DNA of 64,000 bases, taken from contig NW_005434597.1 in assembly GCF_000315625.1 (NCBI RefSeq), positions 46,924-110,923 of the forward strand, read 5' to 3'. Both the position numbers and the translations under genes were made by a program. This document shows, one piece after another, positions 1 through 54,116 of this stretch. The notes below the pieces were generated by a model. The model ran no database searches, was not told the origin of the DNA, and saw only the letters and a program-made list of their open reading frames with translations. How positions within the stretch are numbered: the stretch's first letter is position 1; every line of letters begins with the position of its first letter. Origin of the DNA: Guillardia theta CCMP2712. Taxonomy: Eukaryota > Protista > Cryptophyta.

Positions 1-3000
1 TTGCTGATCTTCTTGCTGAAGCACAAGAGAAGTTCCCTGATGGTGCGTCGCCTGCCTTTGGAAGTGCTTCCGCGGATCATCTCACCCAGCAAGCGCTTGC
101 AGTGCTGCAGGTGGATTTGACTGACATCCTCGACACCACTAGCCTGATCCAGGCGATCAAGCGCTACAGCTCCTTTGCGGGGACCGATGACCAAGGGTGG
201 AGGATTCGGCAACACCTGTCACCCCTTTCTAGTCATCCTGCAGCTTTGAAGCTCTACTGCAAACATATCCTCCAAGGGGTCCTTCTTGGCCGGATGCCGG
301 ATCTTCTTATTCCTGCCCTGTCAGCCATTCGTCGAGGAGGCAGATTTATTCCCCTCTCCAAGGGAGCTGATAAACCTGGTCTCCGGCCAATTGTCATCGG
401 TTCTGCACACCGTCGACTCGCGACGAAGCTTGCTTTGGCAGCGATTCGCTCATTTCTTGACCAGCACTTCCTCTCGTCTCACCCTCGAGCGATTCAGTTC
501 GGACTCGATCGAGACGGCTGTCTGAAGTTCTCGCAAACCGCGTCAGCGCTCCTGCCCCTTCACGCTCGCGGTGATGATGAGGATGTTGCCAACCCCACAG
601 TGCTGGTGAGTTTGGATGCAAAGAACGCCTTCAACTCCCTCGACCGCCAGGCTCTCTTCGACGCAATCGAGGGACGTGCGAGTCGCGACTACTTTGATGG
701 GAGCATCACTGAAGGCGCAAGCTTGCCCTCTTGCGAGCATCTCCGTTTGTTCGCCTCCTACCTCTCCAGCTACTATGGAGACTCTGCTGACCTTCGACTC
801 TTTCACAAAAGTCAGTCAGCCTCCGTTCAGTGTACCTCGGGCGTCTGTCAGGGCGATGTCCCCTCCAGCGTATTTTTCTGCCACAGTATCCACCCCCTGC
901 TCCTCCATATCGCAGAGCTTTTTCCCTCTGTTCGAGTCTTGGCCTATGCTGACAACGTCGTGCTTGTCGGTCCACTCGAGGATGCCGTTGCAGCTACGTC
1001 CGCTATGAAGAAGTACATGTTAGCTGATCTGAAGCTAGAGATTCAACCTCGCGAGTCGAAAGTTTACATCCCCTCCTGGCATCAACACCCTGATCTCTCG
1101 CAGCTGAAGAAGAGCCTTAAGCGCCGTCTCAAGACTCAACTTCTTCACTTCGAGGTCGTCACTGGCGGGATTACACTTGGCGGCCTGCCTATCGGCACGG
1201 ATGGATTTCATGCTAGTCAGCTCCGAGCGAAGGTTTCTACCCTCAACGAAGAGCTCTCGAAGCTCGGGCTCGTCCAGCATGGCTTCATGTTCAAGACGCT
1301 GGTGAGGGCGAGCCATCTCCAGAAGCTGCGCTTCTTCCTCCAGGGGTCTTCTCCGTTTCTCCCGCGGGTCCAATCACAGATTCGTCGCTTTGACCTCTCT
1401 GTCCACCTGGCGCTTGAGAAATACCACCGCTGGCCTTCCTCGCAGTACCTTGCCGCGCATCCCGACCTGCTAGAGTTTGCGAGGTTCAAGCGGGAGCTTC
1501 CGCATAGTCGGGGAGGGGACGAGTTCACGCCCTCTGAGGGTCTACACCCCGCTGTTTACTATACGGCTATCGCTCGCTTCCTCGCTTGGTACTCTGACCA
1601 GCCGATGTCCCGGATGTTGCCCTCTCCTCATAGCCTGGACGTTCACTGCTCGAGATCTCTCCGTGCCCAGAAGCATCCTCTGGCGACCTTCTTCGTTGAG
1701 GCGCACGACTTCGTTCATAATGCTGGAGCGATCCTCTACCGTCGTGTCAAGGCTCCTGCACCGGCTGCAGATGGCGCGGCGATCCCACCTGCCCCGGCTG
1801 CTGTGCCTGATGACGCAGGACGCCCCCCGGCATCTGTGGTACACATCCCTGGTTTGCGCGCTCTCGTCGACTCGTCTCATGAGCACTTCATTCCTCCCCC
1901 TGCGCAGCGAAATGTGACTCCTCTTGTAATGCGCGTCTTCCCTCGACATGTGCATGCTCGCGCTGCGCTGACCGCTCAGCAGCGTGATATCCTCACCTTG
2001 CACAGCCGCAGGACACACTCGCTCAAGTCGCAGGATAGGGTCTTGCAGTCTACCATCTTCGCTCATTTTCCTGAGCGAGACCTGAGCCACTCTCCGATGC
2101 GAGTCTCGAGCTACTACCCCCTCAAGGCCTTCCCGCACCGCTATGCTCAGATGCTCGACTGCTATCTCCATGGCATGCCGATCTGCCAGTGTCCGACGAA
2201 ATGTGATGGATGTCAGCGCGAGCTCGATCCCTCCGTTGCTGCACATCATCTCCAGACCTGCAAACGCCGATCCTCCAAGCTTCCCACGGCGCATGACAAC
2301 CTTACTCGTACGATTCGGTCGATGCTGAACGAAGCTGGTCTTCAGAGCGTCATCGATACAGTGGGGGATCCTCGTTCTCGACGGCAGGTACCCTCCCATC
2401 CTCATGACCGCAAGATAGGGCGATATCCACATCCCTGGAATCCGCGATCGAGGGTCCGAGCAGTACGAGGGCTTGATGGCGGACGTGACGTTGGTCCACC
2501 CTTACATTGGTAGCTCTGCCGACCTGACCAAGTGGGGGGAGGTCAACCTCGACGCCCTCCATGTTGCAGCGTCTGAGAAGATTCGCAAACATCGCGCTGC
2601 ATATGCTATGCCTACTCCTCCTCGAGCGTTCATCCCTCTTGCCATCTCGACGGACGGTACCCTGCATCCTGACACCCTCCGCTTCATCTGGTATTTGGCG
2701 GACATCATTGCTCAGCGCTCGATGCCTCTTGAGGATGCGGCGTTTGGTCGGCACTTCGTGCCTGATGACGGACCTGCTGCTGAGGTCTTGGCTCGCAAAC
2801 GCGCCGCCACCTATCAGCGCCTCACCATGCAGCTGACGCTGGAAGCGCTCTTGTCTGGTGCGAGGCGCATGACGCCCTTGCGGGCGCAAGCACTTCTCGA
2901 GCCAGAGGACAGCTCCTCCTCGGACTTTGTCGAGTCGCCCGAGGAGTCTTCGCCGGAGGACGTCTCGACTCCGATGGGGGAAACCCTTCGAGTGGCCCCG

Positions 3001-3045
3001 ACGATCGGCGCGGAGCTGGCGAAGCGTCTCCGTCCCTCACTGTGA
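1..3045 (+). mobile_element. CRE-like non-LTR retrotransposon ORF (RT + CCHC zinc knuckle + restriction-like PD-(D/E)xK endonuclease), one frameshift, 5' end off-window
   Basis: The frame is open from position 3. RT motifs: LRPIVIGSAHRRL, QFG, LDAKNAFNSLDR, GVCQGDVPSS, AYADN. Then CDGC-x10-H..C and AHD. After a +1 frameshift near 2415-2420 the reading continues HDRKI/GDI...MADVTLVHP...SEKIRKH...FIPLAISTDG (ORF 2473-3045), the typical RLE layout. Confidence 0.9.
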
Positions 3046-3668
3046 CGTCGGGTGCCTCCGGAGAGCTCGACACCACTGGGGTGCTTGCTGCTGGTCCGAG
3101 CTCGCCTGCTTCCTCCCCGGCATCGGTCGCCGGGTCACGCCGGTCCTTGGGCATTGCCGCGGCGTCGCCGCCGTCACGGGCGGCTACCACTGACTTGGCT
3201 ACCGCTGACTCGGAGGCTAGCGAGGAGGACTACCTCGAGCGGTACCGTGTTCATGTGTCCAGCCTCCCTCCGTCCGCTGCCCCAGGCGGACCCCCGGGCA
3301 ACGCCGGCTCCTTGTCGGCGGCTGCCCTTTCTCCGTCCCCGGCCGCCCGCTTTGTGGCGGCAGCGGACGTCTCGACTGACAGTGGTCAGTCGGCTGCCTC
3401 CGGGTATCGCGTCTAAGGGATTTTCTTCCTCCTGCATGCTCCTGCTGCTTGTTGCTTGATTGCTTGACCCTTAGGCTGCTTGTCTGCGCGGCTTCGCGCT
3501 TGGGCTGGCGCTGCCGCGTCTGGGTGCCAGCAGTGCTGGTTGTTTTCGGGCTTGTGTTTTGTGTGTGATTGTGCAGCTTCTCGCTGTGGACTGTGTACCT
3601 GCCGGTTCAGCTTGTTCCTGCTTTGTTTTGCTTGAGGCACTTTTTATCTTCTGCCAGTAAATCCTATA
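3046..3668 (+). mobile_element. 3' UTR of the CRE-like element, ending ...CTGCCAGTAAATCC(TATA) with no poly(A)
   Basis: Follows the stop at 3045. Downstream copies repeatedly end or begin at this same point. Confidence 0.75.
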
Positions 3669-6407
3669 ACTGTAAAAAGTGCGCCGGGGGTCTCCGACTC
3701 CGATGGGGGAAACACGTCGAGTGGCGCCGACGATCGGCGCGGAGCTGGCGAGGCGTCTCCGTCCCTCACTGTGACGTCGGGTGCCTCCGGAGAGCTCGAC
3801 ACCACTGGGGTGCAACAGGAGGAGACCTACGGATTTGCAACAAGCAGCAGGAGCATGCAGGAGGAATAACATCCCTTGTTGCTTGATTGCTTGACCCTTA
3901 GGCTGCTTGTCTGCGCGGCTTCGCGCTTGGGCTGGCGACGCCGCGTCTGGGTGCCAGCAGTGCTGGATCTTTTTGGGCTTGTGTTTTGTGTGTGATTGTG
4001 CAGCTTCTCGCTGTGCGCTGTGTGCCTGGAGGTTTAGCTTGTTCCTGCACTTTTTACCTTCTGCCAGTAAATCCGTACCTTCCGTCCGCGGCCGCCAGCT
4101 TTGTGGCGGCGACTGACAGTGGTCAGTCGGCTGCCTCCGGGCAGTCCGATTTACTGGCAGACCGGGTATCGCGTCTAAGGGATTTTATTCCTCCTCCTGC
4201 ATGCTCCTGCTGCTTGTTGCTTGATTGCCTGACCCTTCGGCTGCTAGAGTCCCGTCTGAATGATAGTGGATTTACTGGCAGAAGGTAAAAAGTGCCTCAA
4301 GCAAAACAATAGTGGATTTACTGGCAGAGGGTAAAAAGTGCCTCAAGCAGAACAAAGCAGGAACAAGCTAAACCTCCAGGCACACAGCAAAATAAAGCAG
4401 GAACAAGCTAAACCTCCAGGCACACAGCGCACAGCGAGAAGCTGCAGTGCACAATCACACACAAAACACAAGCCCGAAAAGAACCAGCACTGCTGGCACC
4501 CAGACGCGGCAGCGCCAGCCCAAGCGCGAAGCCTCGCAGACAAGCAGCCTAAGGGTCAAGCAATCAAGCAACAAGCAGCAGGAGCATGCAGGAGGAATAA
4601 AATCCCTTTAAGGAGACGCGATACCCGGAGGCAGCCGACTGACCACTGTCAGTCGAGACGTCCGCTGCCGCCACAAGCGGGCGGCCGCGGACGGAGAAAG
4701 GGCAGCCGCCGACAAGGAGCCGGCGCTGCCCGGGTGTCCGCCTGGGGCAGCGGACGGAGGGAGGCTGGACACAGGAACACGGTACCGCTCGAGGTAGTCC
4801 TCCTCGCTAGCCTCCGAGTCAGCGGTAGCCGAGTCAGTGGTAGCCGCCCGTGACGGCGGCGACGCCGCAGCAATGCCCAAGGACCGGCGTGACCCGACCG
4901 ATGCCGGGGAGGAAGCAGGCGATCTCGGACCAGCAGCAAGCACCCCAGTGGTGTCGAGCTCTCCGGAGGCACCCGACGTCACAGTGAGGGACGGAGACGC
5001 CTCGCCAGCTCCGCGCCGATCGTCGGCGCCACTCGACGTGTTTCCGATCAAGCAACAAGCAGCAGGAGCATGCAGGTTTAGCTTGTTCCTGCTTTGTTTT
5101 GCTTGAGGCACTTTTTACCTTCTGCCAGTAAATCCTATACTCTTCCTGCAGGTATAGGATTTACTGGCAGAAGGTAAAAAGTGCCTCAAGCAAAACAAAG
5201 CAGGAACAAGCGCTGATAGGTGGCGGCGCGTTTGCGAGCCAGGACCTCAGCAGCAGGTCCGTCATCAGGCACGAAGTGCCTGCAGGAACAGCACTGCTGG
5301 CACCCAGACGCGGCATCGCCAGCCCAAGCGCGAAGCCGCGCAGACAAGCAGCCTAAGGGTCAAGCAATCAAGCAACAAGCAGCAGGAGCATGCAGGAGGA
5401 ATAAAATCCCTTAGACGCGATACCCGGAGGCAGCCGACTGACCACTGTCAGTCGAGACGTCCGCTGCCGCCACAAAGCGGGCGGCCGCGGACGAAGAAAG
5501 GGCAGCCGCCGACAAGGAGCCGGCGTTGCCCGGGGGTCCGCCTAGGGCAGCGGACGGAGGGAGGCTGGACACAGGAACACGGTACCGCTCGAGGTAGTCC
5601 TCCTCGCTAGCCTCCGAGTCAGCGGTAGCCGAGTCAGCATCCTATGCAAATCAGCGGTAGCCGTCCGTGACGGCGGCGACGCCGCAGCAATGCCCAAGGA
5701 CCGGCGTGATCGGAGTCGGAGACCTCCGGCGAAGACTCCCCCTCGGGCGACTCGACAAAGTCCGAGGAGGAGCTGTCCTCTGGCTCGAGAAGTGCTTGCT
5801 TCCGCAAGGGCGTCATGCGCCTGGCACCAGACAAGAGCGCCTCCAGCGTCAGCTGCATGGTGAGGCGCTGATAGGTGGCGGCGCGTTTGCGAGCCAGGAC
5901 CTTTTGTCTGCGTGGCTTCGCGCTTGGGCTGGCGCTTGAGGCACTTTTTACCTTCTGCCAGTGGTCAGTCGGCTGCCTCCGGGTATCGCGTCTAAGGGAT
6001 TTTATTCCTCCTGCATGCTCCTGCTGCTTGTTGCTTGATTGCCTGACCCTTCGGCTGCTTGTCTGCGCGGCTTCGCGCTTGGGCTGGCCGCCTGCCGCGT
6101 CTGGGTGCCAGCAGTGCTGGTTCTTTTCGGGCTTGTGTTTTGTGTGTGATTGTGCAGCTTCTCGCTGTGCGCTGTGTGCCTGGAGGTTTAGCTTGTTCCT
6201 GCTTTGTTTTGCTTGAGGCACTTTTTACCTTCTGCCAGTAAATCCACTTGCAAGACCCTTCATCTTGCGGCCATGAGGATGGGAGGGTACCTGCCGTCGA
6301 GAACGAGGATCCCCCACTGTATCGATGACGCTCTGAAGACCAGCTTCGTTCCGAGCATCGACCGAAAAGTGCCTCAAGCAAAACAAAGCAGGAACAAGCT
6401 GAACCGG
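3669..6407. repeat. Scrambled mosaic of CRE-like element 3' fragments in both orientations (left part)
   Basis: Examples: 3690-3813 matches 2960-3083 (+); 4310-5047 is the reverse complement of ~2985-3665; 5710-5900 reverses ~2785-2975; 6270-6365 reverses ~2315-2415. Confidence 0.9.
5081..5211. repeat. Perfect 60-bp inverted repeat with 11-nt spacer, formed by two element termini tail-to-tail
   Basis: 5081-5140 (gcttgttcct...aatcctatac) is the reverse complement of 5152-5211; the spacer is tcttcctgcag. Confidence 0.9.
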
Positions 6408-6900
6408 TATCAGAGCTCATAGGATAGCGAGCCCAACACAGGAGTGGTCAACACTCGAAATGTGGACAGCACACAAGGATAGCCTCTACAACTATCCAGA
6501 CGAAAGACAGTGATTCTCTAACGGCTACTTTGGTTCAGAAGTCGGACCCCTCCGGGACGGCTTCCCTATCAAGCACCGGTGGAGCTCTCCTTTCTGGTAG
6601 AAACAAGAACAGGAGCAGCGCATGGACCAAAGGGGCCATAGCGACGGCACGAGGCAGGAAGACTCGTGCAAGCGAGGACCACTACCCCTGGGACTTCCAC
6701 AGGGCTATAAAAGGATCAAGATCTTCATCTCTAGGTGGTCTGTCTTCCCTCCCTCTGTGTACCACGCATTTCCCTGTGTTGGTGTGGTTGCTGCAATAAA
6801 GCTTGATAATACTGTCTAGCACCATCTGTGGGAGTCCAGCGGAGGTTCTTTGAGCATTCGCTTGGCTAGTGTGCAACCCGTAAAGCTTCGGGGTGTAACA
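6408..6900 (+). repeat. 5' LTR (493 bp; TATCAG...GTAACA)
   Basis: Matches 12179-12670 except about 1 substitution and 1 indel (ctgtgggagtcc vs ctgtgtgatcc). TATAAAA at 6706-6712, AATAAA at 6795-6800. Followed by the PBS-like TAAATTGGTAGTGAAG. Confidence 0.95.
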
Positions 6901-6990
6901 TAAATTGGTAGTGAAGTGTTGGTGCAGTGTTATCTTGCGGATTTGTGGTGACCGTGTTTCTACTTTCCCCCTTTCCCCTGCCTACCCCTG

Positions 6991-9900
6991 ATGACACATT
7001 ATACACGTCGCACTGCTCACGCTAGCAAACAGACAGCGACCGGAGACGCACTGCTTTCTGATACGGAATGGCAGTCTGCGGCGGGTCACAGCGATACGGA
7101 GGATTTGCTCCCTCAGGAGGAAGATACCCAGCAACTGCCACAAACCTTCGGTGTGCCCACGGAGACGCTTACGATGGAGGGTCTCGCGCAACAAGTGGCC
7201 TTGCTGCAGGCGCAATTAGCCGCCGCCTTTCAGATGGGTGCTCTGATAGCCCCTCAGCAGCCCGCGGCGCCGACGCCGGCAGCTTCTACTGGACAGCATC
7301 CCGCAGCGGCGGGACGCTCCAATGTGTCAGGTGACACACATGCTCAGATGGTGGCAAAGTTGCGCTCAGTGCCAAAGCTGGACACTACGAGGCAGTCACC
7401 ACAACGCAACATTCTCACATGGCTCACAGCTATGCAGTATGAACTAAAGTTGCATCAGATACCCACAGCCTGCTGGGTTCTTTGTGCCCTGGATTTCTTG
7501 GACCAGGCGGCACGCGACTACTATGTGCAAGCCTATTCGGCTACCGAACTTCGAGAGCTTCCCTGGGTGAAGTTCGCCACCCAGCTCAAGTCCCAACACA
7601 TGCCATTGGGACTTCGAGCACAACTCGTTGCCTGTCTGGATCACCTCCGTCAGGAGCCGCAAGAATCCATGGCAACATACTACAAGCGTACGAAGCTTCT
7701 GCCAAAGAACAACTAGATCTCATTCCCGGTGGTGCGGCATTCGCCACCGATGTGATCCTGCGTGAACGCTTTGCAACGGGCATCACTAACGTGACAACGA
7801 AGCTTCTCCTCAATGCATGGAGTGCTTCCCATCTGCAAACGACAGGCTCGGAGCCGACGTTTCCCCGGAAACGTCGGCTTCCCCCGGAAACGTCGACACT
7901 GCACGATGCCAGATGGCTCCGTCAAACAGCTGAATGCTGTGATGCGGGTAAGCCCAATCGAGGTAAGGGAACCCCTGCTGTCACGGGAGTCCCGGGTCAG
8001 TCCCGTTCGGGGGGCAATCCGCAGCACACACGGGGTCGCTCAGGACGTCACTCGTCCAGGGATCAACGACGGGATAACGGCCGTCGCCAGGAGCGACAGC
8101 CTTCTCGATCACCCAGCGCAGAGCGCCGCAATGTCATCTGCCATGCATGAGGACGCTCGGGACACTATGCTAAGGACTGCCGACGAGCTCGTCGCAGCCA
8201 GAGCCCTCATCAGGCCCGCGCACGATCCCCTCGTGCATCGTCCTCGCCAGCGCGCGAAGATGAACAATTCCCCTCTGGTGAAGAGGACGAGCCCACTACC
8301 GCTGCCGTGACGACTCGGCAGGGTAAGCGTGCTGACGCTCAGTCTCGTCGACGCCACCACGTGCAGTTTGATGGCGAAGCACAAGACTTGCTGCAAATGA
8401 ATACGCTGACAGTTCAGACCGCCTCGACGCTGACTCAGGCGGCAGACATCGACTCCAACCTGCTCTACCTGCCCATTCAAATTGAGTCGGAACGAGCAGA
8501 ACAACCCAGAGAAATCCTGGCGCTCCTGGACACGGGGGCGCAGGCATCCATTCTCTCGCGTGCGATTGTAGACGAACTCAGGTTATCTACGCACAAGATC
8601 GCCACCCCGGTGAAGGTCCAGTTCGCCAAGGACGACAGATCGGTTATAGTTCGGGACGCATGTCACCTTGACTTCCGGATCACAGGCACTGACGTCAGGG
8701 CTCAGGAGGAGTTCCTCATCCTTGATGCACACGCGGCGCTGCCCGCCATTCTGAGCCACCCGTTCATCACGAAGTTAAAGATGCAGATCGACTTCTATGA
8801 ACGACGGATTTCCATTCCCTCCTCGACCCACCCCGGACGTCGACAGCAGCTTCCTGTCGCTATGATGTTCCCGCGTGGTCCGCCGGCTGATACATCCTCA
8901 GCGCAAACGACGCCTGCGGGTGCTTGCATATTTCATCCCACTGCTGACACGCTGTGCCATGACATGCGACACGATCTCGCAGGATCGAGACCTCTGGGTC
9001 CCGATGAATTCCCTTGGATCATGACGTCGCTGACAGAAGAGTTTCCGACTACGATGCACGCGCCGTCGGATCCGAGCCCCGAATCCCTTGACGCCGCCGT
9101 CGCGGCATTACTTCAGCAGCTGATCAAGGACTTCGACGACGTCATTGTCGATGAACTTCCAATCCAGGCTCCCATCTCTCGCGGTGAGTATGATGTCGAC
9201 CTGAAGGTTCGCGAAGGCGCGCAGCCGGTGCGTCTTCGTCCATATCGTCTTCCCTCGGCGCTTCAAACTCCGATGGGAAACACACTTCGCTTCCTGCTGG
9301 AGCGCGACCTCATTGAACGGGACGACAATGCTCTTTACCAGAGTCCGGTTATCTTCGTCCGCAAAGGCACCTCGCCTAATGGTGAGCCCATCTGGCGCTT
9401 CTGTGTGGACTATCGGCAAGTTAATGCACAACTCATCGATGACAATTTTCCCCCTCCCATTCCCACAGAACTCATGGAGCGTGTGGGGCGCCAACTGGCA
9501 GCAAACCCGCCAGGTACTCCGCTATGGTTGAGCAAAGTCGACTTAGCTAGCGGGTTTTGGCAACTGAAGCTCACACCTCAGAGCAGTCAGTACACAGGAT
9601 TTGTGACTGAGCAAGGGGCTTACAAATTCAAAGCGCTTCCGTTCGGTCTGAAAACAGCGACGGCCGCCTTCCAAAAGTTTACGCAAGGTATACTGGCTGA
9701 CATCCCCAACGCGCTTGTGTACGTTGATGATGTGCTCCTCTGTACAGCGGGCACGCAAGAAGCGCATCTCGAGGATATTCGCCGCGTCCTGCAGCGCTTC
9801 CGTGAGCACAGAGTTTATGTCAAACGTAGCAAGTGCTCATTCATGCAACAGCAGCTTGATTTCTTGGGGTATACCATCACCCAAGCTGGCATCGCCACGG

Positions 9901-12073
9901 AGCCTAACAAGGTCCAGGCCATTCAACAATATCCGACGCCGGCTTCCGTCAAACGGCAAACTTCTATCGCAAATTCGTCAGCAACTATGCGCGCCTATCC
10001 TCTACGCTGTCAGATCTCTTACAGAACAGTCAGCGCCGTTTCGTATGGACTAAATCTGCTCAGATCGCATTTGATGCCTTGAAACAAGCATTAGCCACTA
10101 CTCCAGTCTTGTGGCACTTTCAGCAGGATCGCGCGACCATCCTGTACACCGATGCTAGTGACCTAGCCATTGGCGCGACTCTACATCAACGCGATCGACA
10201 TGGCAATGAGCATCCAATCGCCTACTATAGCAAGAAGCTGTCTTCCGCTGAACGCAACTATTCGACCTATGAACGCGAGCTCTTGGCTCTCAAGGAGAGT
10301 TTGAAGCACTTCTCCTACTACCTCATCGGACGCCGCTTCAAAGTCAAAACCGATCATCATAGCTTGATTCGCCTGACGACTCAGCCCGAGCTATCCCCTC
10401 GCCTTGCCAGATGGCTGTCTATCTTCCTGCAGTACGATAGGGAAATCGAGCACATCCCAGGGGAACAGAATTCTGTTGCCGATGCGCTCAGCCGTGTGGT
10501 CGACTCCTCGCCCGATCCGGCATCCGCTGCAGCTCGCGAGACGCGCATTGACGACATGGCCAGAGATCTCCTCGTGGGTTTGCATCACATCCAGATCCTG
10601 ACCAATGCCAACTTCTCTCAACAGCTCCTCCATCACTATGCGACCTGCCCGGACTTCCAGATCCTCTTTCAACTAGGACGTGACGGCGAGCTGGTAGGAC
10701 AACCAGGCTGCAAGTCGTTCATCTACCAAGACGAACTGCTCTTCCATCAAGACTCCTTGGGTCGTCGTCGCATCTGCATCCCCATCGCCATGCGGCCAGC
10801 CATACTCCGCATGGGCCATGACGAAGCGGGTCACCTCGGCTCTGACAAGACATATCTCGACCTGGCCACCAAGGTATATTGGTCCAACATGAAGCGTGAT
10901 GTTGAGAATTATGTGCATTCTTGTCTGACCTGCCAAGCCGCCAAGGCATACAAGCAGAGGCCTGTGGGGCTTCCAAAGAGCCATGACGTTCCGGCTGACA
11001 AATTCGACGTACTCTCAGTTGACATTCTCAGCGGACTTCCCATTACCTCTGAAGGCTATGACGCCATCTTCGTCATGGTTGACTCCTTCTCGCAGCATGT
11101 TACCTTGGCTCCGACGACCAAGGACGCAACACAGAACGCGGGGTCTGCCCAAGGCGATCATCTCCGACAACGGCTCAAATTTGTCTTCCCGCTTCTGGGA
11201 TGCGTTGTTTGAGACTCTGGGTGTACAGGTCCGCCACTCATCCAAGTATCACCCTCAAAGCAATGGCCGGGTGGAACGCGCAAACGCTACCATCCTCGAC
11301 ATGCTCAGGACGCGCCTGACCGCCGCTCGTGACGATTGGAGCTCTCATCTTCCTTTTCTCGAGTTTGCCCTCAACCATGCGCCTCGCAAGGAAACGGGTC
11401 TCTCGGCCTTTCAAGTGGAGTACCGGGTCGCAATCCTCGCTCCGCCATGGACTTGACGCTCAGTCCGGTGATTCCTGAGGTGCAATCTACACTTGATCTC
11501 ATCCAGGTGAATGAGAATGTCGTGCGCGACAAGCTCGCAGCAATGGCCAATCGCACCGAAGCTGCCTTACTTCAGACGCGCAGAGTTCTCAACTGGCACG
11601 TTGGTGATCAGGTGTGGCTGGATGCAAGACTCTTCAATCAAACCTTTGAAGTGCGCAAGTTTCGTGAAAAGTTTCTGGGACCCTTTGTGATCACTGAAGT
11701 CTTATCCAACAACAACTACAGAATCAACGTGCATCAACGTTTCCCCAAGATGACCATCGACGTCTTCAACGCCAAGTTTCTTCGTCCTCACATTCAACGA
11801 CAGCCCCAGCTGGACTCAGCTCCGCCTCCCCAGCCTCTCCCGGACTTCTATGAAGTGGAGCGCCTACTCGCTGATCGCACGCAGCGCGGACGCAAGGAGT
11901 ATCTCGTTCGCTGGAAGGGTTTCTCCTCTGCTGATGACACATGGGAACCAGTGGAACATCTCGTTCGCACTCGAGCGCTTCGCAACTTGGTTCAACGCTA
12001 CGACAGGGCCAAACAGCGTGAGCGACGTCCGGTACCTTCCTCTGCTCAGGGACGGCGTTCACGCCGCCTTTGA
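6991..12073 (+). pseudogene. Disrupted gag-pol polyprotein of the chromovirus
   Basis: Gag (LRQEPQESMATYY); zinc knuckle CHA*GRSGHYAKDC; protease LLDTGA; RT WRFCVDYRQVN, KVDLASGFWQ, YVDD; RNase H TDASD...RNYSTYERELLA...TDH; integrase HDEAGH...CLTC, SDNG, HPQSNGRVER; chromodomain YEVERLL...EYLVRWKGFSSADDTWEP. About 5 disablements. Confidence 0.95.
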
Positions 12074-12178
12074 CCGCTCTTTGACTTTGGTCTAGGTGCG
12101 AGTTTGCGGGAGCGTATCAGAGCAAAGAAAGCGAAGTTTTCTGAGTCCTGAGCACTCCAAGAAAGCGCAGAAAGAGCG

Positions 12179-12670
12179 TATCAGAGCTCATAGGATAGCG
12201 AGCCCAACACAGGAGTGGTCAACACTCGAAATGTGGACAGCACACAAGGATAGCCTCTACAACTATCCAGACGAAAGACAGTGATTCTCTAACGGCTACT
12301 TTGGTTCAGAAGTCGGACCCCTCCGGGACGGCTTCCCTATCAAGCACCGGTGGAGCTCTCCTTTCTGGTAGAAACAAGAACAGGAGCAGCGCATGGACCA
12401 AAGGGGCCATAGCGACGGCACGAGGCAGGAAGACTCGTGCAAGCGAGGACCACTACCCCTGGGACTTCCACAGGGCTATAAAAGGATCAAGATCTTCATC
12501 TCTAGGTGGTCTGTCTTCCCTCCCTCTGTGTACCACGCATTTCCCTGTGTTGGTGTGGTTGCTGCAATAAAGCTTGATAATACTGTCTAGCACCATCTGT
12601 GTGATCCAGCGGAGGTTCTTTGAGCATTCGCTTGGCTAGTGTGCAACCCGTAAAGCTTCGGGGTGTAACA
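12179..12670 (+). repeat. 3' LTR (492 bp), preceded by a purine-rich PPT-like tract
   Basis: Copy of 6408-6900. AAGAAAGCGCAGAAAGAGCG lies immediately upstream. Confidence 0.95.
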
Positions 12671-14400
12671 ACCGGCAGGTACACAGTCCACAGCGAGAAG
12701 CTGCACAATCACACACAAAACACAAGCCCGAAAACAACCAGCACTGCTGGCACCCAGACGCGGCAGCGCCAGCCCAAGCGCGAAGCCGCGCAGACAAGCA
12801 GCCTAAGGGTCAAGCAATCAAGCAACAAGCAGCAGGAGCATGCAGGAGGAATAAAATCCCTTAGACGCGATACCCGGAGGCAGCCGACTGACCACTGTCA
12901 GTCGAGACGTCCGCTGCCGCCACAAAGCGGGCGGCCGCGGACGGAGAAAGGGCAGCCGCCGACAAGGAGCCGGCCGGGCGCTGCCCGGGGGTCCGCCTGG
13001 GGCAGCGGACGGAGGGAGGCTGGACACATGAACACGGTACCGCTCGAGGTAGTCCTCCTCGCTAGCCTCCAGCAACGCTAAGGGCCCGCGACCCCGGCCG
13101 GTTCCCCTCTCGCGGGCCAGGAGATACCAGTCGAGCATCTGAGCATAGCGGTGCGGGAAGGCCTTGAGGGGGTAGTAGCTCGAGACACGCTAGACTGCAA
13201 GACCCTATCCTGCGACTTGAGCGAGTGTGTCCTGCGGCTGTGCAAGGTGAGGATATCACGCTGCTGATCGGTCAGCGCAGCCTGGCAGCGCGAGCATGCA
13301 CATGGCGAGGGGAGACGCGCATGACAAGAGGGGTCACTGCCATGTCCGGCGCTGCGCACTGAGGCGGAGGCAAAACTTCGCCGGAGGTCTCCGACTCCGA
13401 TGGGGGAAACCTTTCGAGTGGCGCCGTAATGGCTGGCGAGGCGTCTCCGTCCCTCACTGTGACGTCGGGTGCCGTGCTTGCCCGAAAAGAACCAGCACTG
13501 CTGGCACCCAGACGCGGCACCGCTTGCCCAAGCGCGAAGCCGCGCAGACAAGCAGCCTAACTAAGGGTCAAGCAATCAAGCAACACATGGCATATCCAGC
13601 GCGACTCAGTTTGCGAATCTTCTCCAACGCTGCAACATGGAGGGCGTCGAGGTATATTCTCCCCGTTCAAGGCTTTTCGGGCTTGTGTTTTGTGTGTGTT
13701 TGCCAGTGCAGCTTCTCGCTGTGAGCTGTGTGCAAGCAGGTTTAGCTTGTTCCTGCTTTGTTTTGCTTGAGGCACTTTTTACCTTCTGCCAGTACTACTT
13801 GAAATCCGGCCATGTTACTCCCCCCACTTGGTTAGGTCGGCTCACAATGAGTTTTACCCGCAGTGGTAATTGCGAAGATGATTTACTGGCCGCGAAGGTA
13901 AAAAGTGCCTCAAGCAGTGGTTGATGTCCAACCTCCGAGGCTTCCTCTATATTCATGAGCGCTGAGTCTCGTCCTCATGTCACTGCGTCTCACCTTTCGG
14001 TGAGACTGCAGAGCTTTGGCTGACTTGTCTTGTGTCTTTTTGCTGCAATTCTCGAAGATTGACTGGCAGAAGCCTGGTAAAAAGTGCCTCAAGCAAAGCC
14101 CGCCGAGGAACGGAAAGTAAACCTGCTTGCACACAGCGCACAGCGAGAAGCTGCACAATCACACACAAAACACAAGCCCGAAAAGAACCAGCACTGCTGG
14201 CAACCGTCAGCACTCGGACCCGGCATCGCCAGCCCAAGCGCGAAGCCGCGCAGACAAGCAGCCTAAGGGTCAGGCAATCAAGCAACAAGCAGCAGGAGCA
14301 TGCAGGAGGAAGACGCAATACCCGGAGGCAGCCGACTGACCACTGTCAGTCGAGATGTCCGCTGCCGCCACAAAGCGGGCGGCGGGCCGCGGACGGAGAA
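12671..14400. repeat. Scrambled mosaic of CRE-like element fragments (right part), including reversed coding pieces
   Basis: 12671-13070 reverses ~3215-3605; 13125-13330 reverses ~1915-2170 with deletions; 13590-13655 reverses ~2545-2605; degenerate termini near 13786, 13880 and 14058. Confidence 0.88.
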
Positions 14401-51270: not shown

Positions 51271-53606
51271 AGGGCAGGGGAGGGGGATGGCAGTACCTGT
51301 ATTCGCCGCGGAGGTGCTGCTTGAGGGCATAAGGGTAGGCGGTGAGAATCTTGAGGAGAGTCAGCGAGCTGAAGGAAAGGGAGGAAGCGACCTGAAGGAC
51401 TCTAGTGACCATGGGAAGGAAACCCTTTTTGGAAGCAAGGTTCACAATGATCAACCTGACGGTGCTCTTGTTAAAATGACATCCCCCCAACCCCATCCCT
51501 CCTCCTCCTCTACCACCACCACCTCCTCCTCCTTCTCCTCCTCCTTCTCCTCCTCCTCCTCCTCCTTCTCTCCCCTCACCTTGCAAGTGACCGACATCTC
51601 TTGTGCACGTCCCCCCACGCTTTCCTCGCCTCCCAGTATCGCTCATACCCTGAAGCCAGCTGGAGGTCAGAGGATGAAGACGAGGAGGAGCAACGAACCT
51701 GTTTGAGCGCGGAAAGCGATGAGAAGACCCAGGAAAGAGCCTGTCACTCCTGCACACGGACTTCGATTCAGTGACGGAGCAGCGGAATGAAGTAGGGAAG
51801 GAGCAGCGGAAGGAGGGGNNNNNNNNNNNNNNNNNNNNNNNNNNNNNNNNNNNNNNNNNNNNNNNNNNNNNNNNNNNNNNNNNNNNNNNNNNNNNNNNNN
51901 NNNNNNNNNNNNNNNNNNNNNNNNNNNNNNNNNNNNNNNNNNNNNNNNNNNNNNNNNNNNNNNNNNNNNNNNNNNNNNNNNNNNNNNNNNNNNNNNNNNN
52001 NNNNNNNNNNNNNNNNNNNNNNNNNNNNNNNNNNNNNNNNNTTTTTGAATTTTTATACCTTAATTCGTTGGTTCGATCAATTCGTCCGCCCTTCCCCATT
52101 TTGCTCTGTCTACTCCCCTATTCGCCCACTATTTACAGTCCTTTTCGCCGCCCTTATTTCGCTGTGTGGTTTCCAATCCATTTGACTTTCCCTAATAAAC
52201 ATCTCACAAATAATTTCCCTGAAGCTGTCTGCTATCATGATTCCATCGCCGTCTGATATCTATCTAGATGTTTAAGGGGATCAACTTTCCCCAACTTACC
52301 TCCTCAAACTGACGAGTGGTGAGGTAAGGAGAGGAGGTGAGCGGGGAGGAGAGGGGTAGAGAGGAGAGGAGGTGAGGTGAGAGGGGAGGAGAGGAGGAGA
52401 GAGGAGACGAGGTGAGGTGAGAGGGGAGGAGAGGGCAGGGCAGGACAGGAGAAGGTACAGGAAGGAAGGGTCAAGAGAGAGAACAAGAACAAGAGGGAGA
52501 GGAGAGGAAGCAGAGCGAGTGGACCTGATGAGACGAGCACGTTGACTGTCAGGTGAGGAAGAATTCTTCTGAAGACTCGGGACTGAAAGCTGACAATCAT
52601 GCTGTCAGCAAGACCTTGATGCTCCTCCCCTCCCCTCCGTCAATCATCATCATCATCATCTCCATCATCATCTCCATCATCATCTCCATCATCATCNNNN
52701 NNNNNNNNNNNNNNNNNNNNNNNNNNNNNNNNNNNNNNNNNNNNNNNNNNNNNNNNNNNNNNNNNNNNNNNNNNNNNNNNNNNNNNNNNNNNNNNNNNNN
52801 NNNNNNNNNNNNNNNNNNNNNNNNNNNNNNNNNNNNNNNNNNNNNNNNNNNNNNNNNNNNNNNNNNNNNNNNNNNNNNNNNNNNNNNNNNNNNNNNNNNN
52901 NNNNNNNNNNNNNNNNNNNNNNNNNNNNNNNNNNNNNNNNNNNNNNNNNNNNNNNNNNNNNNNNNNNNNNNNNNNNNNNNNNNNNNNNNNNNNNNNNNNN
53001 NNNNNNNNNNNNNNNNNNNNNNNNNNNNNNNNNNNNNNNNNNNNNNNNNNNNNNNNNNNNNNNNNNNNNNNNNNNNNNNNNNNNNNNNNNNNNNNNNNNN
53101 NNNNNNNNNNNNNNNNNNNNNNNNNNNNNNNNNNNNNNNNNNNNNNNNNNNNNNNNNNNNNNNNNNNNNNNNNNNNNNNNNNNNNNNNNNNNNNNNNNNN
53201 NNNNNNNNNNNNNNNNNNNNNNNNNNNNNNNNNNNNNNNNNNNNNNNNNNNNNNNNNNNNNNNNNNNNNNNNNNNNNNNNNNNNNNNNNNNNNNNNNNNN
53301 NNNNNNNNNNNNNNNNNNNNNNNNNNNNNNNNNNNNNNNNNNNNNNNNNNNNNNNNNNNNNNNNNNNNNNNNNNNNNNNNNNNNNNNNNNNNNNNNNNNN
53401 NNNNNNNNNNNNNNNNNNNNNNNNNNNNNNNNNNNNNNNNNNNNNNNNNNNNNNNNNNNNNNNNNNNNNNNNNNNNNNNNNNNCTTCATCCGTCAGGTTT
53501 CTTTGCCTCACAACTTTCACTCACTCTTTCCGTCTCTTGCCGCAAATCTTCCCCAACCTCAGTGAAGCTGGAGGCTGCTGTGGCAGAGTGAGCAAGGAGG
53601 CAACGG

Positions 53607-53657
<51 letters not shown>

Positions 53658-54116
53658 AAGCTCACCTCTGGCTTCATCTGTTTCTCCTTCACTCGTCCGC
53701 TCACCCCAGACGTTTGGTCTTGCGCGAGTGTTAGGGGAGAGCGAGTTGAGGTACGCTTCTACTGACGACGGGTACTCCCCCACGGCCCTGCTCTCCTCAT
53801 AGAAACCGGCGTCCTCCTCCTCCACTCCTCCTCCCGTCCCCCTCCCTGCTGCTGCTGCTGTTCTTCCCTGATCAAACTGCGATGTGATCCAACGCCTGCA
53901 GCCCCGCCCGCTTCTTCTCCGCCCGTCCCTCAGCCGCCATGATGCAGGGAGCAGCTTCTGGCACAGTGGCGAGCTAGCAAGCAACGACCATGCGGGAGGG
54001 AACCCCTGGCCATGGTGGAGGTAAGACGCTGCTCTCCTGGGGGTCAACAACTCGACTAGGACGAGGAGGATGATATGAGCAGGTGTGTGCTTGCTCCAAT
54101 CGCGTGCCATCGCCAT
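48944..54116 (-). CDS. Bestrophin-like anion channel (VCCN/BST, UPF0187 type), many small exons, N-terminal signal/transit-like extension
   Basis: Spliced by eye: SRVFRRILPHL / GSFLGLLIAFRAQTG / YERYWEARKAWG / AYPYALKQHLRGE / ERLATTP-VPLSYSRHTSRFLS-VWTLTLPF / WALLGTE-MVGHMIEEPFG / ETLPL / MQTPQLL*. Confidence 0.85.
53608..53657. repeat. (GGACGA)n microsatellite (intron)
   Basis: Seen directly. Confidence 0.9.

Follow-up and report, generated by a model that had tools for sequence, protein, structure and literature searches.

Analysis of a 64,000-nucleotide stretch of the Guillardia theta CCMP2712 genome (hereafter the window) indicated that its scrambled repeat locus is best explained as the product of an R2-like retrotransposon family that nests in itself and is probably steered to one place per chromosome, most likely by centromeric chromatin. 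A 14-mer search, self-BLAST and tiling against a reference copy of the element confirmed the scrambled array described in a first-pass annotation of this DNA, with pieces in both orientations and many 3' termini.

The nest is made of 40 pieces of one non-LTR retrotransposon, found on both strands; it begins 2.3 kb before the window and runs to position 14383 (Table 1). Of these pieces, 12-13 stop at the 3' terminus of the element. The array had been placed at 3640-14400. Its mosaic nature was confirmed but its limits were not: it starts 2.3 kb upstream of the window, and the interval 6407-12670 lies outside it, being an intact-looking Ty3/Gypsy chromovirus of 6.3 kb with gag, protease, RT, RNase H, integrase and a chromodomain. 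Self-BLAST and tiling recovered the pieces in switching orientation (23-660 bp) in 3665-6407 and 12670-14383. They come from a single family as proposed, but span the last 1.75 kb of the element and not the 3' UTR alone. The 14-mer terminus was detected with 0-1 mismatch at eight sites (3651+, 4061+, 4147-, 4268-, 4314-, 5122+, 5157- and 6232+) against a chance expectation of 0.03. Together with two diverged copies (13879- and 14056-) and two truncated copies that stop at 5962 and 13794, these sites agree with the previous count of about 12 termini. The two mixed sequence variants noted earlier both occur in the window, and both are abundant subfamilies genome-wide (222 and 148 copies with at most 1 mismatch). 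Ordinary genes were found on both sides of the nest. Further along the window, a GC dip at 52-54 kb is an artefact of N runs.

Table 1 Features of the nest in the window (positions are those of the window; reference, the reference copy of the element)
Feature	Position	Strand	Remarks
Near-full-length copy of the nest element, its 3' 3,664 bp	1..3664	+	First 1,245 bp precede the window; ~4.84 kb plus a 74-bp insert. Two breaks: frame break near 2418 and, before the window start, a 74-bp 3'-UTR fragment in the poly-Q region
Open frame with reverse transcriptase (RVT_1) and CCHC knuckle	102..2513	+	
CCHC knuckle and restriction-like endonuclease (PD..D-x-K) region	2200..2740	+	Limits approximate
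3' terminus of the long copy	3651..3664	+	Without poly(A); followed by a short variable tail, here TATA
Younger mosaic, 21 tiled pieces of 28-660 bp	3665..6406	both	Reference positions 2720-4070; 90-100% identity to reference
Smallest insertion seen	4142..4161	-	15 nt of terminus and 5-nt tail; 5-bp duplication CCGGG on either side; read by eye
74-bp terminal fragment within an older (-) copy	4314..4387	-	10-bp target duplication
Composite 663-bp block of five pieces inside an older (-) copy	5046..5708	mixed	Host halves 4386-5045 and 5709-5902 contiguous in reference
Tail-to-tail pair of terminal fragments	5071..5211	mixed	21-bp spacer between; as RNA, predicted stem of ~60 bp
Two same-strand pieces	5934..6245	+	8-bp microhomology joint at 5955-5962, 6 nt before the terminus; resembles a template switch
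(-) copy split by the Gypsy element, left half	6365..6407	-	Right half at 12670-13070
Ty3/Gypsy chromovirus	6407..12670	+	LTRs 6407-6900 and 12178-12670, 99.6% identical
Older mosaic, 10 pieces	12670..14383	mixed	83-98% identity to reference; right edge of the nest

Judged by its sequence, the nest element is an R2-like non-LTR retrotransposon of the restriction-like-endonuclease (RLE) type. It is approximately 4.8 kb long, with one long ORF encoding a reverse transcriptase, a CCHC knuckle and then a restriction-like endonuclease. The RVT_1 match of this ORF (E 1.5e-6) fell just under the Pfam cutoff. A 12-sequence profile gave the R2 proteins 9nl3 and 9dou as its best solved-structure matches (E 1e-16), the RT and CCHC/RLE stretches both being aligned, whereas the match to L1 ORF2p was weaker (E ~1e-4). 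The CCHC/endonuclease stretch aligned with the endonuclease region of R2 (domain E-value 0.005), and residues C763, C766, H778, C782, D837, D857 and K889 were nearly invariant in 12 relatives. Like R2 and other RLE-bearing elements (R4, NeSL, CRE, HERO, Utopia), the Guillardia element has a single ORF in the order RT, CCHC, PD..D-x-K, and its copies display the marks of target-primed insertion by elements of this type: a precise 3' end without poly(A), here with a variable tail of 3-5 nt, variable 5' truncation and short target duplications. Each of those families cuts a single defined target (rDNA, spliced-leader or snRNA genes, microsatellites). In contrast, the Guillardia element is confined to one chromosomal domain, and no common motif was found among 17 clean target sites. 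A DNA-binding domain was not found in the element. Pfam detected no AP endonuclease domain, which, with the endonuclease being restriction-like, excludes the Zepp/ZeppL family proper, and no tyrosine recombinase, so a DIRS identity was rejected. A Penelope-like identity was also rejected, as neither a hammerhead ribozyme nor GIY-YIG was found. Exact-protein look-ups of two junction-spanning ORFs returned nothing on record.

Junction statistics were drawn from 11 regions (74 kb) containing 223 pieces with a median length of 79 bp; 77 of these end at reference position 4064 or beyond, a count that is inflated because the sampled loci were picked around termini. Reference coverage in these regions reached 71x at the 3' end compared to 1-5x in the 5' half. 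The terminus bias at junctions, a check proposed in the first-pass annotation, was present: the last reference bin held 57 of the 223 piece ends, against 1-6 per 10-bp bin elsewhere. Terminus-bearing pieces had a median length of 67 bp, the shortest being 15 nt. After the terminus, the element's own sequence resumed within 15 nt in 41 of 56 flanks, in both orientations. We identified 24 triplets with contiguous flanks, of which 19 had a duplication of 4-10 bp and 21 bore a terminus; in 1000 shuffles, the same three counts had means of 2.8, 1.2 and 1.0 and maxima of 9, 5 and 5. With TSD-flanked nesting 8-fold over the shuffle control, these results support the earlier idea that the element targets itself, but not that it is confined to its own 3' region, since target sites are spread along the whole element. 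In one host copy, successive insertion sites lay roughly 110-180 bp apart. Template jumping, the other half of that idea, is plausible at some junctions, judging from the 8-bp microhomology switch at 5955-5962.

The first-pass annotation had also set this pattern apart from ordinary LINE decay. That holds only in part: extreme 5' truncation and nesting account for a good share of the pattern, and much of the apparent shuffling is ordinary target-primed insertion in an extreme form. New copies would be added by target-primed reverse transcription. Their target would nearly always be DNA of the same family, entered in either orientation and with no set target sequence, and cDNA synthesis would mostly abort after 15-150 nt, filling the nest with tiny 3'-terminal fragments, each within a 4-10 bp target duplication. 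Repeated rounds involving at least two subfamilies, combined with insertions accompanied by target deletions and with microhomology-mediated joins or template switches, would then produce the scrambled look. The nests would thereby offer a natural system in which abortive target-primed reverse transcription is very frequent and 15-nt cDNAs are still integrated with target duplications. For the tail-to-tail pairs, double priming at one staggered cut was rejected, as the strand geometry (our own reasoning) predicts termini that point outward, whereas those seen point inward; two insertions close to each other are the better fit, and such pairs are not clearly more numerous than expected by chance.

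Genome-wide, 697 exact termini were detected. On the 11 largest contigs, all 97 termini fell within one span of 1.3-29 kb per contig; some 50 further contigs displayed the same one-nest pattern, which was seen on approximately 100 contigs overall. The first-pass annotation had suggested looking for similar arrays and their position relative to telomeres: the result is one nest per scaffold, internal on each of the four contigs of 1.23-1.30 Mb that carry (TTTAGGG)n at both ends (C2-C5). Two strays were located 56 and 96 kb away from the nest of their own contig (C21:590345 and C90:300739). The nest family differs in this from related RLE families and the Gypsy LTR, whose copies are dispersed in the genome. 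The Gypsy insert in the nest is therefore incidental, and co-targeting of the chromovirus to nests was rejected, its LTR being scattered through the genome.

The presence of one nest per chromosome-scale scaffold makes the nests good candidates for the centromeres of G. theta. On the grounds of position and analogy, which are the basis of this reading, integration would be steered by something present once per chromosome, most likely centromeric chromatin, and the nests would mark centromeres. In Coccomyxa subellipsoidea and Chlamydomonas, clusters of the LINEs Zepp and ZeppL, respectively, form local peaks of GC content and have been interpreted as centromeres (PMC3446292; PMC8226300). The one-nest-per-scaffold pattern of Guillardia matches these green-algal clusters, although the endonuclease class differs; the Zepp-like behaviour of one cluster per chromosome, with the family absent elsewhere, was seen on 11 of the 11 largest contigs, on the four two-telomere scaffolds and across the approximately 100 contigs, apart from the two strays. 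Zepp and ZeppL are L1-clade elements with an AP-type endonuclease and poly(A), whereas the Guillardia element is R2-like, with a CCHC knuckle and a restriction-like endonuclease and without poly(A), its host is a cryptophyte and its fragments are far shorter (median 67 bp). In Dictyostelium, DIRS-1 prefers its own copies as insertion targets, and each chromosome has a single scrambled cluster of it, located at the centromere. DIRS-1 has a tyrosine recombinase and terminal repeats; the Guillardia element differs in that Pfam found no such domain and insertions carry TSDs.

We tentatively propose, with a confidence slightly short of evenly balanced, that an R2-superfamily element may have swapped sequence-specific for centromeric-chromatin targeting, and that the nests may be the centromeres of about 80-100 small (~1 Mb) Guillardia chromosomes. 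No description of cryptophyte nuclear centromeres was found in the searchable literature. If the proposal is true, the nests would be the first sequenced centromeres of a cryptophyte, having arisen independently of the green-algal Zepp centromeres and convergently with them, and would show that an RLE lineage known for strict sequence-specific targets can evolve domain-level targeting without a motif. A once-per-chromosome marker would allow centromere mapping, chromosome counting (~80-100 predicted) and artificial-chromosome design in a model of secondary endosymbiosis.

Alternatively, the nests could be safe havens with no link to centromeres, each grown from one founder insertion per chromosome through homology- or protein-guided recognition of DNA or nascent RNA of the element itself. 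Nearly every insertion is indeed in the family's own sequence, the young Gypsy insert is free of nest-element insertions, and no other repeat common to the nests was found, their flanks being unique. However, target sites occur all over the element, in either orientation and without a consensus, and it is difficult to see how exactly one founder per scaffold, on approximately 100 scaffolds and with hardly any secondary nests, could arise unless a once-per-chromosome feature were involved. We therefore consider this explanation unlikely.

Self-nesting steered by centromeric chromatin does not account for every joint. In the 11 regions, 144 of 212 junctions (two thirds) went beyond simple nesting, several of them with microhomology, indicating that another process contributes. 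Host DNA repair, through Pol-theta-type templated insertions or break-induced template switching in a fragile repeat, could have reshuffled copies after their insertion, much as the first-pass annotation suggested in proposing that transposons are shredded by repair. Overlaps of at least 2 bp at 56% of 68 abutting or overlapping junctions, compared to ~15% expected by our own calculation, and the common fillers of 1-30 bp are consistent with this. Host repair is nevertheless not favoured and appears quite unlikely as the explanation, because the pile-up of piece ends at the RNA 3' terminus (57/223) and the 4-10 bp TSDs on terminus-bearing inserts point to retrotransposition; the Gypsy element within the nest is also unshredded.

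It is highly unlikely that the locus is mainly a hairpin or dual-strand small-RNA source silencing the element in the manner of a piRNA cluster. A perfect stem of ~60 bp predicted in the window (z -18.9) and inverted repeats of ~640 bp with 95% identity (3001-3632 vs 4386-5023) would suit such a role, but mRNA-seq reads over the mosaic were sparse, on both strands, and the 98-100% identity of many copies points to recent activity and hence incomplete silencing. Dual-strand piRNA clusters are likewise dense, mixed-orientation graveyards of transposon fragments; they bring together numerous families and are recognized by their small RNAs, whereas the Guillardia nest is nearly mono-family and known from DNA sequence. 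Transcription through the inverted copies could feed dsRNA silencing as a by-product of self-nesting. Rfam microRNA matches at 5081-5211 were rejected, as they were far below gathering thresholds and reflected only the inverted pair.

An assembly or cloning artefact in the repeat is extremely improbable: although the scaffolds are of 2012 era and gapped and no single spanning read or contig was obtained, misassembly does not make precise TSD-flanked insertions, each of the approximately 100 nests has its own unique junctions, and unitigs (~60 nt) of an independent 2021 DNA run showed numerous other mosaic joints of these same sequences.

Self-comparison of the window (C77:46924-110923; assembly of 87 Mb in 669 scaffolds) indicated that 3000-6400 and 12670-14400 are made up of a single repeat, here called the nest element, with pieces in both orientations, in agreement with the mixed-orientation mosaic described in the first-pass annotation. 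The recurrence of its precise 3' end (the terminus) was also confirmed: a 14-nt terminus sequence with at most one mismatch occurred 8 times within 3651-6245, versus 0.03 expected by chance, and two diverged copies were found at 13879 and 14056. Tiling against a natural 4,070-bp reference copy, whose position 1 lies 405 bp upstream of the window, resolved -2323 to 14383 (negative positions are upstream of the window start) into 40 pieces, 12-13 of which stop at the terminus. All tiled pieces derived from reference positions 2320-4070 and, except for a near-full-length (+) copy ending at 3664 (the long copy), measured 23-660 bp. The order of pieces is that of the assembly scaffold; reads over this region gave only short unitigs. 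Identity to the reference was 90-100% for pieces left of a Gypsy element and 83-98% for those at 13.1-14.4 kb, indicating that this cluster of nested pieces (the nest) grew over time. Ordinary genes were found beyond it, in both window and flank. An apparent fall in GC content to 0.32 at 52001-54000 was accounted for by N runs (52697-53483 and others), ruling out AT-rich DNA.

The Gypsy element is a 6.26 kb Ty3/Gypsy chromovirus (6407-12670) with LTRs 99.6% identical, sitting within a (-) copy of the nest element. Its family is dispersed across the genome, and its presence in the nest is therefore incidental. The chromovirus coding region (6991-12073) is split over overlapping frames (gag, PR-RT, RH-IN and IN-chromodomain); despite the near-identical LTRs, this arrangement reflects either frameshifts or programmed frame changes.

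Pfam analysis of the nest-element ORF (102-2513) detected a weak RVT_1 match and no other domain. A library-wide search found 757 relatives, the majority metagenomic. In P0081, a metagenomic relative of the nest-element protein, a ubiquitin C-terminal hydrolase (UCH) domain is fused N-terminally to an RT-RLE body. Alignment of 12 relatives revealed a C-x2-C...H-x3-C knuckle followed by conserved residues D837, D857 and K889. The best solved-structure matches of this 12-sequence profile were the R2 retrotransposon proteins 9nl3 and 9dou (E 1e-16), in two stretches corresponding to the reverse transcriptase and the CCHC/restriction-like endonuclease (RLE) region; L1 ORF2p scored about 1e-4 with the same profile. 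These profile matches identify the nest element as an R2-like, RLE-bearing non-LTR retrotransposon. Its 5' end is common to six genomic copies and, in the long copy, precedes the window start by 1,245 bp. The reading frame is already open at the element's first base, with the first ATG only 67 codons in. No DNA-binding domain was recognised in the N-terminal part of the protein, where a poly-Q tract is present; this long CAG/poly-Q tract separates the N-terminal part from the RT (L001:9380-9900; window -640 to -90). The long copy has two breaks: a 74-bp piece of the family's own 3' UTR within the poly-Q tract and a frame break near 2418. The 3' end has no poly(A); the terminus is followed by a variable tail of 3-5 nt (TAT plus one base in 30/57).

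Junctions were analysed after pooling the window with ten additional regions, drawn from six scaffolds (223 pieces in 74 kb). In these loci, which were chosen around termini, 57 piece ends fell in the last reference bin versus 1-6 per 10-bp bin elsewhere, a terminus bias on which the first-pass annotation had made its reading depend; 77/223 pieces ended at reference position 4064 or beyond. Reference coverage dropped from 71x (3' end) to 1-5x (5' half), and terminus-bearing pieces had a median length of 67 bp (<100 bp in 49/77). In 24 cases, one piece split an older copy into halves contiguous in the reference, with a 4-10 bp host duplication in 19 and the terminus in 21. When piece order was shuffled 1000 times, these three counts averaged 2.8, 1.2 and 1.0 and reached at most 9, 5 and 5, respectively. 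Such short, terminus-bearing, duplication-flanked inserts are signatures of target-primed reverse transcription aborting very early and are not what misassembly would produce. No motif was common to 17 clean target sites. The DNA after the terminus was the nest element itself, in either orientation, in 41/56 cases, which supports the self-targeting proposed in the first-pass annotation. In one host copy (L002, C43:413400-415500), short terminal insertions, all on one strand, occurred at five reference positions (2050, 2230, 2350, 2462 and 2570); their spacings (181, 119, 114 and 107 bp) may reflect a nucleosome-scale periodicity of target choice.

Allowing multi-piece blocks gave 34 nesting events, 28 with a terminus at one of the outer edges, and left 144/212 junctions unaccounted for by criteria that would miss insertions with target deletions. 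Some resemble switches mediated by microhomology, as at 5955-5962, where a piece halts 6 nt before the terminus and resumes at reference position 3782 via 8 shared bases. By our own calculation, abutting junctions overlapped by at least 2 bp in 56% of cases versus about 15% expected. Either the reverse transcriptase, by the template jumping suggested earlier, or DNA repair may be responsible for such joins. Nearly all window junctions were found nowhere else in the sample, indicating that nests are not copies of one another.

Coordinates of nested insertions, terminus pairs, flanking genes and related elements
Feature	Position	Remark
74-bp fragment	4314-4387	10-bp duplication; window example of nested insertion
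15-nt terminal fragment + 5-nt tail	4142-4161	CCGGG on both sides; read by eye
Tail-to-tail terminus pairs	C3:644393-644408, C3:645303-645328, C43:416976-417009, C10:560646-560666, window 5135-5157	
ABC transporter		upstream of nest
MFS transporter, GH38 mannosidase, kinases, Mg-chelatase H		other side of nest
Other RLE family copies	C19:796730-800500, C22:193553-197260, C4:598680-602105	outside nests

Tail-to-tail terminus pairs recur with different spacers (14-32 bp), each side bearing its own TAT-type tail. For the pair at 5071-5211, folding predicts a perfectly matched stem about 60 bp long (-117 kcal/mol, z -18.9), and self-comparison also identified inverted repeats of 640 bp in the window. 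Based on this predicted stem and these repeats, the nest could be a source of silencing dsRNA, as previously suggested. Few RNA reads mapped over the mosaic, on both strands, and contigs from presumed RNA runs contained colinear element sequence, not the window mosaic. Many element 3' ends elsewhere were 98-100% identical, indicating that the family was recently active.

A genome-wide count of such arrays, proposed in the first-pass annotation together with their position, revealed one nest per scaffold. The exact 17-mer terminus occurred 697 times. Its 97 occurrences on the 11 largest scaffolds were all confined to one 1.3-29 kb span on each, in randomly mixed orientations. The 100 sites listed for a rarer terminus-plus-tail pattern fell on about 50 further scaffolds, in one place each. 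Two 3'-UTR variants extended nests to more scaffolds, with two strays outside nests (C21:590345 and C90:300739). Scaffolds C2, C3, C4 and C5 (1.23-1.30 Mb) appear to be whole chromosomes (about 1.25 Mb each), since the nuclear telomere repeat (TTTAGGG)n was found at both ends in the correct orientation; each has a single nest, located internally at roughly 56%, 50%, 32% and 57% of scaffold length, respectively. Short interstitial telomere-repeat blocks were observed 2-16 kb inside some ends of C1-C7.

The same pattern is described for ZeppL in Chlamydomonas (PMC8226300), and TE-built algal centromeres were confirmed by CENH3 ChIP in Chlorella (bioRxiv 10.1101/2024.02.27.582245). By analogy, the Guillardia nest element may work like ZeppL/Zepp-type centromere clusters. 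Unlike the L1-type endonuclease of that family, its endonuclease is restriction-like, which places it outside that family. Our literature search yielded nothing about the centromeres of Guillardia or about the nest element, and no publication that connects RLE elements with centromeres. Other RLE families in the genome, with 36-47% protein identity to the nest family, were dispersed; confinement to nests is thus specific to this family rather than the outcome of selection against all insertions. At least two such RLE families were observed, with ORFs of 1,350-1,468 aa and several frames open.
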